DNA of 64,000 nucleotides from Rebecca billardiae RCC1528. Lineage: Eukaryota > Protista > Haptophyta. The notes below the pieces were generated by a model that worked only from the letters and a program-made list of their open reading frames with translations, ran no database searches and was not told where the DNA came from. Shown here in pieces: positions 1,643 to 9,649 of this stretch (position 1 is the stretch's first letter; every line of letters starts with the position of its first letter). Location: assembly GCA_965240325.2 (NCBI GenBank), contig OZ251222.1:4402001-4466000 (forward strand), given 5' to 3'. The translations under genes and the position numbers were made by a program.

Positions 1643-3509
1643 TCACACCGCCGCGCCGGGCAGTAACCGCGCGAGCAGCAGCCGGCCGAGCGCGCCGAGC
1701 GCCAGCGCGCACACCCACAACGCGCGCGTGGTCGCATCGGCGCGGCGCTCGATCTCGGCGTACCCGAGATTGGGGTTCTGGATGAGCATGAAGATCTGCG
1801 GCTGGAAGAGGAAGGGCGCCGCCTTGGCGAGGCCAAGGCGCAGGAAGACGTTGAGCGCCCAGAAGGCCTGGCGCAGCTTGGAGAGGCGCGCCTCCTGCCC
1901 GTACTGCGCGCGCAAAGGGGGGCGGCGCGGGGCGCGCGCCCGCGCGTCAGCGCAGCCGGCGCGCGGCGCGCGCGCTCGTGCCCGCGCGCGCGCAGCACAC
2001 GGGCAGCAGGCAGCAGGCAGCAGGCAGCGGGCAGCAGGCAGCAGGCAGCGGGCAGCAGGCAGCAGGCAGCAGGCAGCAGGCAGCGGGCAGCAGGCAGCAG
2101 GCAGCAGGCAGCAGGCAGCAGGCAGCAGGCGCGCACACGAGGCGTGTGCACACCTGGAACGGGTACCCCAGCCGCACCAGCCGGGTGAGCGCGGCGGCCT
2201 CGCGCGAGCGCTCGGCGTCGTACTGCTGCAGCGGGGCGCGCAGCGCCGGCGGCGGCCGCGCGTCCTCCCCGAAGCGCACGCCGTGCTCCTCGAGGCGCTC
2301 GTCGAGCACCGCCACGTCCTGCAGCCCCGAGTTGACGCCCTGCCCAAGGTCGGGCGGGAACGCGTGCAAAGCGTCGCCCGCGAGCAGCGCGCCGGCGGAG
2401 TCGCAGCCGTCGGGGACGAGCGCGGCGTGCGTGCAGTGCTGCGGCGCGGGGAAGTGCCCGCCCGCGCTGCGCGTGAAGCGCGCCAGCTCCTCGTCGCCCA
2501 CCTCGTCGAAGGGCACGTGAGGGAAGACCTCCCCCAGGTAGGCCTTCATGCCCTGGAGCGAGGTCTGCTCCCACAGGGGGTGCTCGTGCCGCGTGATGAA
2601 GTTGGCGGTGCGGCCCGCCGCGTCGGTGCGCAGCGGGAGCAGGCCGCACTTGAGCGGGCGCGGCGCGCCCGGCGTCGAGCGCACCGAGTACGAGATCTCG
2701 GGCACCGCGACCTGCCGCGTGCCCCGCGCGAGCGCAAAGCCGGGCGGCAGGTTGAGCACCTTGTACCGCAGACCGGCGGACGCGCACCGGCGGCGCACGG
2801 TCGAGAAGGCGCGGCGGCGGCCGCCGAGCTCGGCGAGCTTGGGCCGCACGGCGGAGTTGAGGCCGTCGGTGCCGAGCACCAGCTGCGCCGACAGCTCCAG
2901 GCCCGCCCCGCCGGTCCCCTCCGCCGACGGCGCGACGCCCACCCGCCACTCGCCGCCCGGCGCCGCGCGCTCGAGCTGCAGCTCCGAGAGCTCGTACCCG
3001 TACAGCCGGTCGACGGGGTGCAGCCCGGAGGCGGCCGCGTCGTCGGCCGCGGTCGCGACCACCGCGTCGTCCAGGATGCGCACGAGCTTGCTCCGCGGGA
3101 TCCACTGCGCCGGCACGCGCTTGCGCTGCTCGAGGTCGACCGTGGGGAGGGCGACTGGCTCGCTCACCGGCGGGTCTGCGTCCGAGACGATGGCGATCTT
3201 GAAGGCCTCCTGCGAGACGCTGTTGTCGAGGAGCGTGTCGATCAAGCCGAGCGACTCGAGCGTCGACTGCCCCCGCCCGTCCACGTTGTACAGGAACGCG
3301 CGCTCGGGGTCGAACGCGGCCGGATCGGCCGACTTCTCGACGAGCGCGACGCGCGCGCCGCGGTTGCGCAGCTTGAGCGCGGCGGCGAGGCCCGTCGGCC
3401 CGGCCCCAACGATGACCGCGTCGTAACGCGCGAGCGCGTTGGCCTGCCCGGCGAGCGCAGCCAGCGCGACGAGCGCGCGCCGGCTCGGCGCGCCGTAATC
3501 CCACGCCAT
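1643..3509 (-). CDS. FAD-dependent monooxygenase (kynurenine 3-monooxygenase / aromatic hydroxylase-like) with N-terminal signal peptide; intron 1904..2153
   Basis: YDAVIVGAGPTGLAAA (GxGxxG), LVLGTDGLNSAVR (DG motif), LAGDALHAFPPDLGQGVNSGLQD (GD motif). A GT..AG intron joins YPFQ to YGQEARL. Confidence 0.88.
2002..2129. repeat. (GGCAGCA)n heptamer minisatellite inside the monooxygenase intron
   Basis: Direct tandem repeats with occasional GGCAGCG variants. Confidence 0.95.
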
Positions 3510-3674: not shown

Positions 3675-4682
3675 ATGCGCGCCCTCATCGCACTCGTCGC
3701 CGTGCTCGCGCTGCCGGCGACGCGCGGCTCGTCCTCGGCGGTGTGCGCGTCCCCCCGCGCTGTCCTCGTGACGGGCGGCAACAAGGGGCAGGGCTTCGCG
3801 CTGTGCGAGCGCGTGCTCGCCGAGCATCCGGACGCGCACGTCTTCCTCGGCGCGCGCAACCGCGCCAAGGGCGAGGAGGCGGTCGCGCGGCTGGAGGCGC
3901 GCGCGCCCGGCCGCGTCGAGCTGGTCGAGCTCGACGTGACGGACGACGCCTCCGTCCGCGCGGCGCACGCGCACGTCGCCGCCCGCCTCGGCGGCCGCGC
4001 CGAGCTGCACGGCATCGTGAGCAACGCCGGGATCCTGTGGGGCCACTCGCTGCACGAGCTGGTCGAAGTGTGCACGCTGGGCGTGCAGCGCGTGGTGGAC
4101 GCGTTCGTCCCGCTGCTCAGAGCCGACGGCGGCCGCGTCGTCGTCGTCTCCTCGGGCATGGGCCCGCTGCTCCACGGCTACGCCTCGGCCGAGCGGCGCG
4201 CGGCCATGGCGGACCCGTCCCTCACGTGGTCGCAGCTGCGCGCTATGATCGACGAGTGCCTGGCGGTCGAGCGCGCGGGCGGCGAGGGCGAGGAGTTCGA
4301 GGCGATCGGCTTCGGCGGCGGCCCCTTCTCCGAGCTCCCGTACTTCCACAAGTACGGCCTCGCCAAGATGTTTGCGGACGTGTACATGCAGACGCTCGCG
4401 CGCATGCACCCGCAGCTGGTCGTCAACTCGTGCGACCCCGGCCTCGTCTTCACCGACCTCGCCAAGGAGGTGCCGCGCTTCAAGGACAAGACGCGCGAGG
4501 AGGCGGGCGCGGCGACGCCGGCAGAGGGCGTCGAGGCGGCCATGCGCCTGCTCTTCGCCGACGTCGGCGCGGGCGCCGAGGTGCGCGGCAGCGGCGAGTT
4601 CTACGCGATGAGCAAGGACCGCTCAGCGCTGCTGCGCTCGACCATCGACCAGAAGCCCGCCGCGCCCGCGGCGTCGGGCTAG
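3675..4682 (+). CDS. Short-chain dehydrogenase/reductase, carbonyl reductase-like, with signal peptide
   Basis: VLVTGGNKGQG, SNAG, VVVVSS, YGLAK (YxxxK), NSCDPGLVFTDL. Intronless. Confidence 0.9.
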   Translation: MRALIALVAVLALPATRGSSSAVCASPRAVLVTGGNKGQGFALCERVLAEHPDAHVFLGARNRAKGEEAVARLEARAPGRVELVELDVTDDASVRAAHAHVAARLGGRAELHGIVSNAGILWGHSLHELVEVCTLGVQRVVDAFVPLLRADGGRVVVVSSGMGPLLHGYASAERRAAMADPSLTWSQLRAMIDECLAVERAGGEGEEFEAIGFGGGPFSELPYFHKYGLAKMFADVYMQTLARMHPQLVVNSCDPGLVFTDLAKEVPRFKDKTREEAGAATPAEGVEAAMRLLFADVGAGAEVRGSGEFYAMSKDRSALLRSTIDQKPAAPAASG

Positions 4683-5063: not shown

Positions 5064-7730
5064 CTATGGCAGCTGCCGCCGAACCTTAGTTGACGATGAT
5101 GGCTTGCTGATGTCGTCAGCTACCACGGCCCGCACGGGTGGAGTCGCCTGCGCGCGCGGTTTTCTCGCCGGGCTCGGCGAGGCTGGCTGCGCCGGTGCTG
5201 CCGCGAGCGCCGCGTCGGCCACCGGGTGCTGCAGCCGCGTGAAGAAGGCGAAGAGGCTGACCGCGCCCATCACGGACGAGACGCACGAGACGGCGAGCGC
5301 GCCGACGATGGCCGAGGTGCTCCGCCCGCCGTGCGAGGCCGGCATGACCTGCGTGAGCGGGTTGGGCAGCCCGAGCGTGTTCGACAGCACGTACAGCAGC
5401 CCGTCCTCAAAGTCCCACCCCTCCACACCCGCCAGGATCCCGCCGAAGACCACGGCGAACAGGAGCACGCCGAGCGGCACAGAGAGCGCCACGTACAGCA
5501 GCACCGGCGGCACCTCGGCGGGCACGGCCGGCACACCCGCCGGGAAGGGCGGGGGCTGGGCCGCGCCGGGCGAGCCGGGCACGCCTGGCCGCGCGGAGTG
5601 GCCCACCCGCGCGCCTCGCCGGCGTGACACCACCGTCGCGCTCACGTGCTCGTGCCCCGCCACCACGCTCGCCGGCAGCGCGAGCGCCCCCGCCAGCCCG
5701 AGCCACGTGCCGAGCAGCGCGATCGTCCACACCGCGACCACGGTGGTGTGGATGTCGCCGTAGGGGGTGGTGGGCATGATGGAGACGATGGGGTTGCCCA
5801 GCCCGCACACGATGCCCACTGCCGCGCGCGCGGAATCGCCCACCGCCGAGCCGCGCCCAGTGAGAGGAGGGAGCGGGGCGCGCGCCGAGCGCGCCCCGGC
5901 CCGGTATGCGGTGCGGTGCGGCGCGGTGGGGTGTGCGGTGCGGTGTGGCGCGGTGGGGTGTGCGGTGCGCGCGCACCGATGAAGTAGATGCCGACCTCCG
6001 TGGCCCAGCCCTCGACGGCAGCGAGGATGGCGCCGAGGATGACGATGAGCACGGCGATCACGGGTATGCTCGCGAGCAGCAGCGCGCCAAACGACGCCGC
6101 CGGCCGGCGGCCGAGCGCGCCGCCCTCCCACCAGCGCGCAAAGCTCTCCACGGCCTTGAGCGAGCCCACGCTGCCGTACATGAAGACCGTCAGTGAGAAG
6201 ACGAGCAGCGAGATGCACACGTTGAGGAAGACGCCGCCCGGCGTGGCCGGCTCGACGTTGACGAAGGGGTTGGGCAGCATCGCGAGCGACGCCATCACGT
6301 ACAGCCCGCCCGTGCCCGCGCGCCACCCCTCTGCGCCGTCGAGCAGCAGCCCTGCCAGGAAGGAGACGGCCACGACGAGCAGCGGCAGCAGCACCAGCGC
6401 GAACGCGCCGAACGCGGCCGCCTCGGGCAGCGGGCCGCGGCCAAAGAGGCGCTCGTACCGGCGCAGCTGGCGCATCGGCCACGCGAGCGACGTGGACAGG
6501 CTGATCATCCCACCCGCCCACGCCAGCGCCCACATCGAGATGAGCAGAAGCAGCCCCACGCCAGTCGGCGTGCTCGGCCCCACGCTGGTGAGCGGGTTGG
6601 CGAGGCCGCACACGAGGCTCACCATGTACAGCAGGCCGCTGCCAAAGTCCCAGCCCTCGGCGAGGGCGAGCACGCCGCCGCACACCGCGCACACCAGCAG
6701 GCCGCCCAGCGGCGCGTACACCAGCAGGAATCTGCGCCCGAGGCGCCGCGCGGTGCGCGCGCACCGAGCGCAGCGCGCGCGGAGCGGTGGCGTGAGGCTG
6801 GGCTGGCGCGGCCTGAGGCGGGGGGCGCGCGTGCGCGGCGCGCAGGGCGCACCTGATGAAGGCGAGGCGCGTGTTCGGCAGGTCGTACCACAGCCACGAG
6901 GGCTCGCGGTACTGCTTCGCCTCCCGCTCCGCGCGCAGCGCAGCCACCTCGCGCCGTGCCCGCCGGCCTCGGTGCGCCGCCTGCAGCCGCGTCGCCGCGC
7001 GCTCCTTGCGCGCGGCGCGGCTGGCGTCGCGCCGCGCGCGCCGGGCCGAGGCGATGCTCTCGCTGCCGCTCTGGCTCGCATCCGCCTGCGCGCGCACCCG
7101 CCGCCGCGCCGAAGACGCGCCCGTCGTCGGCGCGCCCTCCGCCTCGTCCCTGCGCTCGGCGCGCGCCGGCGTCTCCGCGTCCGGAGCTGCCACAGACGGC
7201 TGCGAGCGGCGGCGGCGCGAGGATCGTCGCGTCGAGTCCGCTGGGTCGGCGTTCGTCCGTTCGGACGCTGGGTCGGAGAGCGCGGCGCGCGAGGCCGCAG
7301 ACGCCGCAGACGCCGCGCCGGGGACCACGATGCGCGTGGCCACCTCCGCCGCCGCGGCAGGCGCGGACGCGCGGGCGCCCGTGGGCGTGGGGAGGCTCAG
7401 CCGCTCCACATCCCGCGGCGTGCTGCGCGCCGCGTCGACGGTAGTGGGGGCGGCGGCGGAGGCCACGTCGCTCGCGCCGCGTGCAGCCGCGCTTGCGGGC
7501 TCGTGCGCAGCGCGCGCAGCGGGCGAGACACTGCTCGGAGTGGCCGGCGGGAGCGCCTGCACCGCGGACGCAGGCGCTGCCTCGCGCGGCGTGCGCGGGG
7601 GCGTCTTGAGCGCCTGGGGCGTGGAGGCGGCGGCTGGTGTGGCCGAGCGCTCCGCGGCAGCGGGAGCACTCGCCGCCGCAGGCGCCGCGGCGCGAGCCCC
7701 GAAGAGCTGGCCCAGCCCGTTACCCAGCAT
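5064..7730 (-). CDS. IQ-motif protein with four tandem 2TM/pore-loop (Ion_trans_2-like) modules; introns 6732..6852 and 5819..5976, possibly also an in-frame intron near 5556..5645
   Basis: AATRLQAAHRGRRARR IQ motif, then four TM-EGW-pore helix-[GM]LxNP-P(x)T/SxxG-TM units. GT-AG splicing restores the frame (FIR|FLLVY and YFI|VGIVCG). Confidence 0.72.
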   Translation of the reverse strand: MLGNGLGQLFGARAAAPAAASAPAAAERSATPAAASTPQALKTPPRTPREAAPASAVQALPPATPSSVSPAARAAHEPASAAARGASDVASAAAPTTVDAARSTPRDVERLSLPTPTGARASAPAAAAEVATRIVVPGAASAASAASRAALSDPASERTNADPADSTRRSSRRRRSQPSVAAPDAETPARAERRDEAEGAPTTGASSARRRVRAQADASQSGSESIASARRARRDASRAARKERAATRLQAAHRGRRARREVAALRAEREAKQYREPSWLWYDLPNTRLAFIRCALRAAHARPPPQAAPAQPHATAPRALRSVRAHRAAPRAQIPAGVRAAGRPAGVRGVRRRARPRRGLGLWQRPAVHGEPRVRPRQPAHQRGAEHADWRGAASAHLDVGAGVGGWDDQPVHVARVADAPAAPVRAPLWPRPAARGGRVRRVRAGAAAAARRGRLLPGRAAARRRRGVARGHGRAVRDGVARDAAQPLRQRRAGHAGRRLPQRVHLAARLLTDGLHVRQRGLAQGRGELCALVGGRRARPPAGGVVWRAAAREHTRDRRAHRHPRRHPRCRRGLGHGGRHLLHRCARTAHPTAPHRTAHPTAPHRTAYRAGARSARAPLPPLTGRGSAVGDSARAAVGIVCGLGNPIVSIMPTTPYGDIHTTVVAVWTIALLGTWLGLAGALALPASVVAGHEHVSATVVSRRRGARVGHSARPGVPGSPGAAQPPPFPAGVPAVPAEVPPVLLYVALSVPLGVLLFAVVFGGILAGVEGWDFEDGLLYVLSNTLGLPNPLTQVMPASHGGRSTSAIVGALAVSCVSSVMGAVSLFAFFTRLQHPVADAALAAAPAQPASPSPARKPRAQATPPVRAVVADDISKPSSSTKVRRQLP

Positions 7731-8074
7731 CTCGAACGATGGCGGGCACGGGGGAGCCCAGATTTCTCTTGTGCTGAGCTGGATTGTGGGCGGGCCGCCG
7801 GACCACGTCTGGGACGTCCCGGTTTCGAGAACGAGCCCGATCTGCCCGGACCGGTGACAATGTTGAATGTTCCGCCCCTGGCTGGTACTCTCCGCCATCG
7901 CACTCGCTTCACGCGTGTGCCCGCCGAGTAACGATGGCGGCGCAGTCCGGAGGAGAGTACCAGACAGGTTCCGCCCCCGGTTTCGTGGGCGCTCCTGCCA
8001 ACGAACGTGCTTCGTCCTCCGGCCGGCGCTGGGTTTGCGAAAGGGCCCAACAGTGAACAGTCACACACCCAGCC

Positions 8075-9649
8075 ATGGCGGAAGCGCAACTTCCACCGGC
8101 CGTGGAGGACGACGCCGTGGTTGAAGGCGCGGAGCTCGCGCACCTGCACGATGCGGGCTGCGCCTCGCGGCTCACAATGAGTTGGATCGACTCGCTCGTC
8201 CGCCTCGGCGCCCGCAAGGAGCTCGAGCCGGCTGACCTGTGGCGGCTGTCCGAGGAGCAGACGGCGCGGCGGCGCGGCGAGGTGCTCGCGCGCGCGTGGG
8301 CCGAGGACACGGCGGCGGCGCGGGCGAAGGGGCACCCCCGGGGCTCGCTCGTGCGCGCGTGGCGCCGCGTGCACGCGCGGCAGCTGATGCAGGGCGGCGC
8401 CGTCATGGCCGTGCTGCAGTTTGTGCAGCTGTCGCCGTACTGGTGCTTCAACGAGCTGCTCACCGTGATCACACAGCAGCGAGGCGTCGCGGTGGGCCTG
8501 CGGCTGTCGGCGCTGCTCGTGGTGCTGCTGTGCAGCAAGACGCTCCTTGAGAACCACTACGTCCGCATCCAGTGCGCGCGCGCGCGCGCGCCGCCGCCGC
8601 CGGCCGCGCGCGCGCGCGCATGCGCGAGGCGATTGGCTCACGCCCAGCGCGCGCCCCGCGCACGCCGCGCCGCAGGTTCTCGCTCGGCGTGGACGTGCGC
8701 GCGTCGGTGATGCACTTCGTGTACTCGAAGGCGCTCGTGCTCACGCCCACCGCGCGGCAGGCCAACTCCGTCGGGCAGATGGTCAACCTGATGCAGCTCG
8801 ACTCCGAGAAGCTCGTGCTCGGCTTTGCGGTGCTGCACCAGCTGTGGGCGGGGCTGGCCAACGTGCTGCTGGCGGCGGCCATGCTGCTGCACGTGATCGG
8901 GCCGGCGGCGCTCGCCGGGCTGGGGGTGATCGTGCTGCTCATCCCCGTCTCGATGGCGCTCACCGATGCCCAGCGCCGCCGACAGAACCAGGTGTGTGCG
9001 CGCGGACGCCAGCGGTGCGCGAGGCCGCGCCCTCCGCCCGACCGGCTGAGCGGTTGGTGCTCCGCGCGCGCGCGCCGTGCGCCCGTCGCAGGCGGCCAAG
9101 TTCACGGACGAGCGGATCAAGGTGCTGAGCGAGGTGCTGCAGGGCATCCGCGTGCTCAAGTTCTACTCGTGGGAGGCCGCGTACCTGCGGCGCATCTGCG
9201 CGCTGCGCGGCGCCGAGCTCGAGCAGCTCGGCGCCAAGGCCGTGCTGAAGGCGCTCTCGTCCGTCTGCCTGGACGCGGCGCCCACGTTCGCCACCGTCGC
9301 GACGTTCGCGGCGTTCGTGTGGCTCGGCGGCGCGATCTCGCCGGCGACGGTGCCGACGGTGTTCACCACGCTCGCCGTCTTCACGCAGCTCCGCGTCCCC
9401 CTCTCCTCGTACCCGATCACGATCGGCATGCTGGGCGACGCGCACGTGTGCGTGCAGCGGCTGCAGCGCTTCTTCGCGCTCAAGGAGCTGCCCCAGCTCA
9501 AGCAGCTGCCCGCGCTGGACGAGCGGCCGCAGGGGAGCGCGGACGGCGGGGGCGCGGGCGGGGAGGCGGGCGTGCGCGTCGACGGCGGCACGTTCTCGTG
9601 GGACCCGGAGCTCACCACGGACGGCACGTCCGGGCGGCTCTCCGACCTT

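Follow-up and report, generated by a model that had tools for sequence, protein, structure and literature searches.

In the genome of the haptophyte Rebecca billardiae RCC1528, a 64,000-nucleotide stretch of contig OZ251222.1 (hereafter the window, to whose positions all coordinates refer) contains on its minus strand a predicted channel-like gene (7730..5064), whose product carries four pore modules in one chain. We reason, with a probability of roughly 65%, that this is a real three-exon gene encoding a diverged membrane protein of the potassium-channel superfamily, in which the four fused modules form a single-chain pseudo-tetramer. The family to which it belongs would constitute an unnamed and strongly diverged offshoot of the superfamily of potassium-channel pores (P-loop, Ion_trans_2); in place of the TxGYG filter its members have a loop, G-L-x-N/T-P-L-T, that is two residues longer. 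The locus is one member of a large, mostly two-module and unnamed family of marine protists. A preliminary description of this DNA, made from the sequence alone, had named no characterised family for it; the locus is not a singular invention, and four-module forms recur in the family.

Gene model and pore modules

The predicted gene is composed of three exons and two short introns:

6853..7730, minus strand: exon 1, with an Ala/Arg/Ser/Pro-rich low-complexity N-terminus (~290 amino acids, aa), an IQ motif and the beginning of the first helix (M1) of module 1
6732..6852, minus strand: intron 1 (121 nt, GT..AG, phase 2; GT donor at 6852)
5977..6731, minus strand: exon 2, with the whole of modules 1 and 2 and, from module 3, M1 and the pore helix
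5819..5976, minus strand: intron 2 (158 nt, GT..AG, phase 1), which cuts module 3 between pore helix and loop
5064..5818, minus strand: exon 3, which completes module 3 and continues through a cytosolic Arg/Pro-rich linker of ~50 aa into module 4, the C-terminal tail and the stop codon

Joined, the exons give a 795-aa open reading frame (ORF) without frame error, which begins at the sole in-frame ATG of exon 1 (7730), passes through an Ala/Arg/Ser/Pro-rich exon 1 translation finishing in ...RLQAAHRGRRARREVAALRAEREAKQYREPSWLWYDLPNTRLAFI, and ends at a TAG codon (5066..5064). Five independent observations appear to back this splice model. Firstly, both introns are of the GT..AG type and the frame is restored at both junctions. 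Secondly, the GC content at third codon positions (GC3) of exon 2 (0.95), exon 3 (0.91) and the IQ-bearing part of exon 1 (0.95, 6855-7082) matches that of a neighbouring dehydrogenase gene (0.97), and neither intron has third-position GC periodicity. Thirdly, intron 2 harbors a 27-bp tandem repeat (5903-5969, 2.5 copies, 95% matches). Fourthly, a profile scan of the six-frame translation placed module 3 in two reading frames, broken exactly at intron 2 (the same scan found no further module anywhere in the 64-kb window). Lastly, the spliced protein is colinear with P0004 (39% identity over 426 aa, E 4e-82, no gaps at the junctions), an uninterrupted 509-aa ORF that is present on two public contigs and carries all four modules. 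At intron 1 the M1 sequence LAFI/R/FLLVYAP is continuous with the family profile, and at intron 2 the junction IYFI/V/GIVCGLGNP aligns gap-free to P0004.

Could the gene model be wrong, with the locus encoding two separate two-module K2P-like proteins, or with a downstream start that excludes the IQ-bearing exon 1? The junctions are predictions, the ~75% GC creates long ORFs in several frames (including that of an ATG at 7081, which reads into exon 2), exon 1 is weakly periodic over its initial ~100 codons, without a clear signal (GC3 0.80-0.84 over 7730-7430), and P0004 has no long N-terminus. Nevertheless, module 3 is complete only once exon 2 joins exon 3, and a cut into two plus two modules is impossible because exon 2 on its own encodes an unbroken chain that starts with module 1 and stops halfway through module 3. 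P0004 holds its four modules in one ORF with equal linker lengths, the IQ frame has a GC3 of 0.95 over 6855-7082 (against 0.80 for the alternative), and the start of M1 (LAF) is encoded in exon 1 and fits the profile. We consider a wrong gene model very unlikely.

Two variants of the three-exon structure were dismissed: the different frame that opens at ATG 7081 and reads into exon 2 without splicing (GC3 of 0.80 vs. 0.95), and an extra intron in the linker between modules 3 and 4 (GTGAGC at 'HEH/VSA'). As this linker is equally long in P0004, no additional intron is needed in exon 3. On the minus strand over 5064-7898, one frame has no stop in 944 codons, reading through both introns and the region upstream, and another is open over 479 codons. 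Because the DNA is so GC-rich (~70-75% in the window), ORF length is uninformative on coding, and third-position GC is the useful discriminator.

Translation of the minus strand recovered exactly all the peptides quoted in the preliminary description, and the four transmembrane-turret-pore helix-loop-transmembrane units it had reported are thus reproduced. The modules are non-identical, each being composed of M1, pore helix, loop and M2, which amounts to eight transmembrane helices and four re-entrant loops. They score 57-115 bits against the family profile (far above chance) and, joined by linkers of 15-50 residues, make up a pore part of ~450 residues. No voltage sensor is present, as each repeat has only two transmembrane helices plus the pore helix. 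The canonical filter (T-x-G-[YFL]-G) is missing from all four modules, whose filter positions are occupied by the following loops:

6587..6607, minus strand: GLANPLT, module 1
6260..6280, minus strand: MLPNPFV, module 2
5784..5804, minus strand: GLGNPIV, module 3
5352..5372, minus strand: GLPNPLT, module 4

As read from the sequence, the almost uncharged P-loops alternate with the Arg-rich N-terminus, the three inter-module linkers and the C-terminal tail. By the positive-inside rule, both termini would be cytosolic and the loops would enter the membrane from outside, as they do in K+ channels.

The protein family and its filter loop

When a 7-module profile was run exhaustively with HMMER, 489 representative proteins matched at E <= 1e-3, of which 298 reached E <= 1e-10 and 51 reached E <= 1e-30. 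The sequences stem from metatranscriptomes, metagenomes, MMETSP, EukProt (Cladocopium) and NCBI (Symbiodinium pilosum, Prorocentrum cordatum); all sources that bear a name are dinoflagellates, and all the names that were looked up read 'hypothetical' or 'unnamed'. A word-indexed search with exon 2 returned only two 400-aa relatives, a region-restricted one aimed at long relatives returned none, and P0004 as query retrieved itself alone. Word-indexed searching is almost blind to the family, and it was the exhaustive profile search that brought it to light. No relative was encountered among viral contigs (alignment A1 as query), and no description of a GLxNP family was found in the literature. 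Hence, the earlier statement that no characterised family resembles this protein stands as far as names and publications go, although it overlooked the eight-transmembrane/four-pore layout of the Trk/Ktr/HKT transporters (see below).

Modules were counted in 153 proteins (152 retrieved and the window's own). The majority (127 of 153) carry two modules, while one module was found in 7 proteins, three in 9 (mostly fragments) and four in 9; P0005 represents a tenth four-module protein, in which one module is split by an insertion. The canonical T-x-G-[YFL]-G was not found at the filter position in any of the 153 proteins (the pattern occurs elsewhere in 4 of them), which bears out the claim that it has been replaced. 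The modules share instead a common skeleton, P..G...A..EGW....G..Y......GLxNPLT...PxT..G, the conservation of which was computed over 329 modules. M1 is marked by P14 (99%), G (90%) and A (78%) and terminates in E-G-W (E32 97%, G 59%, W34 94%); the pore helix contains a G (87%) followed by Y/F; the loop reads G-L-x-N-P-L-T (G49 69%, L 62%, N 44%, P53 82%, L54 78%, T55 64%); and M2 is preceded by P59 (93%), T/S and G64 (92%).

These figures bear on the idea that a tandem-pore K+ channel has degenerated here into a non-conducting relic, retained as a membrane scaffold, sensor or regulatory subunit, or that the gene is simply decaying. The K+ filter is indeed completely lost, the window's loops have few charged residues at their mouth, and the N-terminus is long and of low complexity. 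Against such decay, the loop ranks with the better-conserved parts of the 329 modules and lies beside the near-invariant P59 and G64, a degree of conservation that points to selection acting on this loop. Moreover, the frame is intact, GC3 is very high, the four modules are kept one-to-one with those of the orthologue P0004 (37-48% identity), and the family is large and diversified. We regard a relic as unlikely, and favor a functional pore protein.

Homology to known pore domains is detectable, in sequence comparison, at the family-profile level only. When a 148-module profile was searched against the PDB sequences, the NaK channel and its variants came first (E 4.4e-4 to 2e-3), followed by Tsukamurella CTP, TOK1, K2P2, K2P13, K2P10, TASK2, KvAP and MthK, with K-channel-type pores accounting for 59 of the 60 matches listed. 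This search supersedes the one performed with the 7-module profile, in which the K2P matches were not significant and a lipase ranked on top. In the alignment to NaK, the family's E-G-(W) falls on the Glu at the end of M1, its P-x-T-x-x-G-K falls on SPQTDFGK, and its loop forms a 2-residue insertion relative to TVG(YG)D. The proposal of a filter loop about two residues longer than TVGYG is therefore correct, and the proposed K2P/KcsA-type pore frame agrees with both the profile matches and the predicted fold. Ion_trans_2, the only membrane family that recurs among the relatives, was detected by Pfam in 7 of 95 (best E 3.2e-5). Protein-language-model neighbours are likewise Ion_trans_2 clusters, with scores that count as leads only.

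The unit made of M1, pore helix, loop and M2 occurs in tandem in K2P/KCNK, plant TPK, fungal TOK1 and viral Kpov channels, and the family is also like the K2P type in closing M1 with a Glu, in having an aromatic residue within the pore helix and in placing P-x-T-x-x-G ahead of M2. In contrast to K2P channels, the family lacks TxGYG/TxGFG and has the longer GLxNPLT loop in its place, and its turret (in the model of modules 1 and 2 described below) is only ~3 residues long, with no extracellular cap. Furthermore, K2P and TPK channels are dimers with two pore domains per subunit, whereas the window protein has four modules per chain. NaK (Bacillus cereus) and CTP (Tsukamurella), which head the sequence matches of the family profile (structural Z 9-11.6), resemble the family in being K-channel relatives with an altered filter, the selectivity of which is relaxed; they differ in being single-module homotetramers, with a filter (TVGDG) that is still K-channel-like.

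Predicted fold and origin of the four-module forms

Modules 1 and 2 (residues 1-195 of exon 2) were modelled with AlphaFold2 (AF2) from an alignment of 127 two-module relatives. The resulting model has a predicted local distance difference test score (pLDDT) of 95.7 and a predicted template modelling score (pTM) of 0.87, and comprises M1 (5-25), a 3-residue turn, a 12-residue pore helix (29-40), a 14-residue loop (41-54) and M2 (55-79), after which the same elements follow again. All 50 matches listed by Foldseek were K2P channels (probability 0.84-1.0, template modelling (TM) scores 0.40-0.59), with weak E-values (0.03 and above). VIA, a Foldseek-independent structure search, returned P-loop pore domains in all the 50 matches listed, belonging to tetrameric cation channels except for KtrB and glutamate receptors. 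The matches spanning both modules included TASK3 (Z 9.5, 154 residues), TPC3 (Z 9.5, 180), AtTPC1, NaV1.7 and KtrB (Z 8.1, 182), and the ESM Atlas matches were Ion_trans_2 clusters. By analogy with K2P/TPK, two-module relatives would pair up to complete a pore. An aquaporin NPA motif, a CorA GMN motif and an inverted topology of the ionotropic glutamate receptor (iGluR) type, all suggested by the 'NP' loop and the AMPA-receptor fold matches, were ruled out on account of the unit of two transmembrane helices plus pore helix, the K-channel sequence affinity and the positive-inside rule, which puts the loops outside.

The four-module arrangement was modelled on P0004, the 39%-identical orthologue, using a 13-row alignment of four-module proteins together with exon 2 of the window gene; full-length alignments set the two-module proteins out of register on a four-module reference, and those alignments were left out of the folding. 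The model (pLDDT 78.2, pTM 0.77) consists of four M1/pore-helix/loop/M2 units. In a VIA search covering 48,161 PDB representatives, its best matches across all four modules were NaV1.7 (Z 17.6, 406 residues) and NALCN (Z 17.6, 386 residues, 4.8 Å), with CaV2.2 (Z 14.9, 393 residues), CaV3 (Z 13.9) and CaV1.1 (Z 11.7) as further four-module matches; lower down, single pore domains of K channels, NaK and glutamate receptors matched individual modules (Z 10-11.6). Because P0004 superposes on single-chain four-domain channels, the four modules are predicted to be arranged as a pseudo-tetrameric pore, in line with the pseudo-tetramer of eight transmembrane helices and four pore loops put forward in the preliminary description, and the single chain should close into a complete pore. 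NaV, CaV and NALCN likewise set four different pore units of one chain around one axis, and it is on their four S5-P-S6 units that the P0004 model falls. Their repeats, however, have six transmembrane helices, with voltage sensors and P1/P2 helices, whereas those of the window protein have two, and beyond the fold there is no sequence similarity between them.

The only described proteins that place eight transmembrane helices and four pore loops in a single chain are the cation transporters of the Trk/Ktr/HKT kind (SKT superfamily), and in the papers searched the wording 'eight transmembrane / four pore' always refers to them. The window protein shares their layout of four M-P-M units, and it could be an SKT-like transporter that takes up K+ or Na+ in a channel-like, regulated fashion, with no descent from K2P channels. 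Foldseek puts KtrB and TrkH on top for P0004 (7zpr_G, E 2.3e-3, probability 0.99; 6v4k_A), KtrB spans 182 residues of the two-module model (Z 8.1), and the semi-conserved glycine of each loop (G49, 69%) is reminiscent of the one glycine in the filter of SKT loops. Yet the TM-scores to KtrB and TrkH are low (0.22-0.26, at a root-mean-square deviation of 22 Å), and VIA ranks the pores of NaV, NALCN, CaV and K channels first, with no Trk/Ktr in the best 50 matches of P0004. At the sequence level, the TrkH Pfam domain (PF02386) was not found in the window protein or in 95 relatives, and the family profile matches channel pores (NaK, K2P, TOK1, MthK), Trk/Ktr being absent among the 60 matches listed. 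The relatives are mostly of two modules, an architecture that, to our knowledge, does not occur in SKT proteins. An SKT-like transporter seems improbable to us in comparison with a diverged K-channel-type pore.

For such a pore, the most likely function is the conduction of cations, without the selectivity of K+ channels, through a wider filter lined by Asn/Thr side chains. We infer conduction and selectivity, as well as monomeric function and Ca2+/calmodulin control, from the features described here.

The modules of the window protein and P0004 pair one-to-one (48, 39, 37 and 44% identity, each being the best pairing), while those within either protein are just 27-38% alike and show no ABAB pattern. 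As the modules are orthologous one-to-one and yet internally diverged, the fusion must be old in this lineage, and the divergence of the four positions is as expected for a fixed asymmetric pore. Four-module forms arose several times. P0003 (with P0153 and P0154) goes back to a two-module gene that was duplicated in tandem very recently, and has an ABAB pattern and halves that are 76% identical. A dinoflagellate-containing group (P0061, P0073, P0085 from Prorocentrum cordatum, P0105 and P0111) is also ABAB, at ~40%. Its modules 1 and 3 carry the loop G-N-L-V-L-I-P-L-T, two residues shorter and thus of K-channel filter length, and its modules 2 and 4 carry S-H-x-P-S-L-x-P, which gives the filter a two-fold symmetry. 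P0136 is a four-module protein that is different again.

Possible calcium link, genomic neighbourhood and significance

Upstream of the modules, the preliminary description had reported an IQ motif:

6945..6986, minus strand: IQ motif LQAAHRGRRARREV (residues 249-262, ~30 residues ahead of M1)

The motif conforms fully to the consensus [FILV]Qxxx[RK]Gxxx[RK]xx[FILVWY], with no second match in any of the six frames of the window; composition would predict 8e-5 matches. It remains below the gathering score of the Pfam IQ model (PF00612; 13.5 bits vs. 20.3, E 0.066), and none of the relatives, P0004 included, has the long N-terminus. NALCN, NaV and CaV channels use IQ motifs and calmodulin. Found in this gene only, just before M1, the motif may recruit calmodulin, in parallel to the EF-hands of a few relatives (3-4 of 95 by Pfam; e.g., P0032, P0146), which lie C-terminal to the modules, as EF-hands do in plant TPK channels. 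Ca2+ control of the family is plausible, and calmodulin control of the window protein may be a reasonable idea, built on one IQ match that the family does not share. P0146 resembles a single-module subunit with an EF-hand, while P0001, P0002 and P0005 possess long C-terminal tails that look coiled-coil-like by eye. Residues 1-30 of the window protein (7640-7730, minus strand; MLGNGLGQLFGARAAAPAAASAPAAA) are hydrophobic and Ala-rich, and represent a candidate signal or organelle-targeting peptide.

Several points weigh against the reading of this locus as a gene for a single-chain, pseudo-tetrameric pore. The splice junctions and the expression of the gene are predictions drawn from its sequence only, and Pfam Ion_trans_2 misses the window's own protein (exons, E <= 1). 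The [GM]LxNP loop, described at first as consistent, is so in the four window modules, but its Asn is not invariant (44% across the family, replaced by Thr, i.e. TP, in two modules of P0004); with few charges and a proline, the loop offers no clear ion-binding chemistry. The Foldseek E-values are on their own not significant (0.002-0.03), and the TM-scores to solved chains are moderate. The alignment behind the P0004 model is shallow, the orthologue is only 39% identical, and AlphaFold may default to a known channel arrangement; the four-fold closure is predicted from superposition, and an open central pathway and its lining residues would be putative. As for the IQ motif, it sits in a low-complexity Arg/Ala-rich region and has no match in ~160 relatives, P0004 included.

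In the vicinity, a short-chain dehydrogenase gene (adh_short, E 2e-20; 3675-4682, plus strand) converges on the 3' end of the channel-like gene. Next to it, an ORF on the minus strand (1947-3400) encodes a FAD_binding_3 monooxygenase domain, and its translation finishes in repeated 'ACCLLP', which looks like read-through into a minisatellite or intron. On the other side, a divergent gene starts at 8075 (plus strand; no Pfam match in its first 158 aa), separated from the start of the channel-like gene by ~345 bp of lower GC (7731-8074) that look like a shared bidirectional promoter.

P-loop channels, which rank among the most thoroughly studied membrane proteins, are known in only a few chain layouts: one unit (assembled as four), two units (assembled as two; K2P/TPC), or four units equipped with voltage sensors (NaV/CaV/NALCN). 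Although the odds are somewhat against so far-reaching a claim, we tentatively propose that the window gene may encode a pore-only monomeric channel of ~450 residues, the GLxNPLT selectivity of which would be unlike that of described P-loop channels (Na+/Ca2+ or unexpected), and that it would belong to an uncharacterised marine haptophyte/dinoflagellate family whose chains passed from two modules to four repeatedly and recently. This step is thought to have produced NaV/CaV from simpler channels. Given the coexistence of one-, two- and four-module members with a recent ABAB duplication (76%), the duplication route to pseudo-tetramers can be directly observed here.

While the K-channel-type pore itself is known, the novelty lies in a conserved filter loop on a K-channel scaffold, fused into a predicted single-chain pseudo-tetramer. 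A scaffold of this kind with a different conserved loop amounts to a natural experiment on what it can select for. If the reading is true, a sensor-less monomer (~450 core residues) would provide a minimal system, the four filter positions of which could be mutated independently, unlike those of homotetramers. For haptophytes and dinoflagellates, in which membrane excitability and Ca2+ signalling are of importance to calcification, blooms and symbiosis, the family supplies a set of candidate ion channels that had gone unrecognised.

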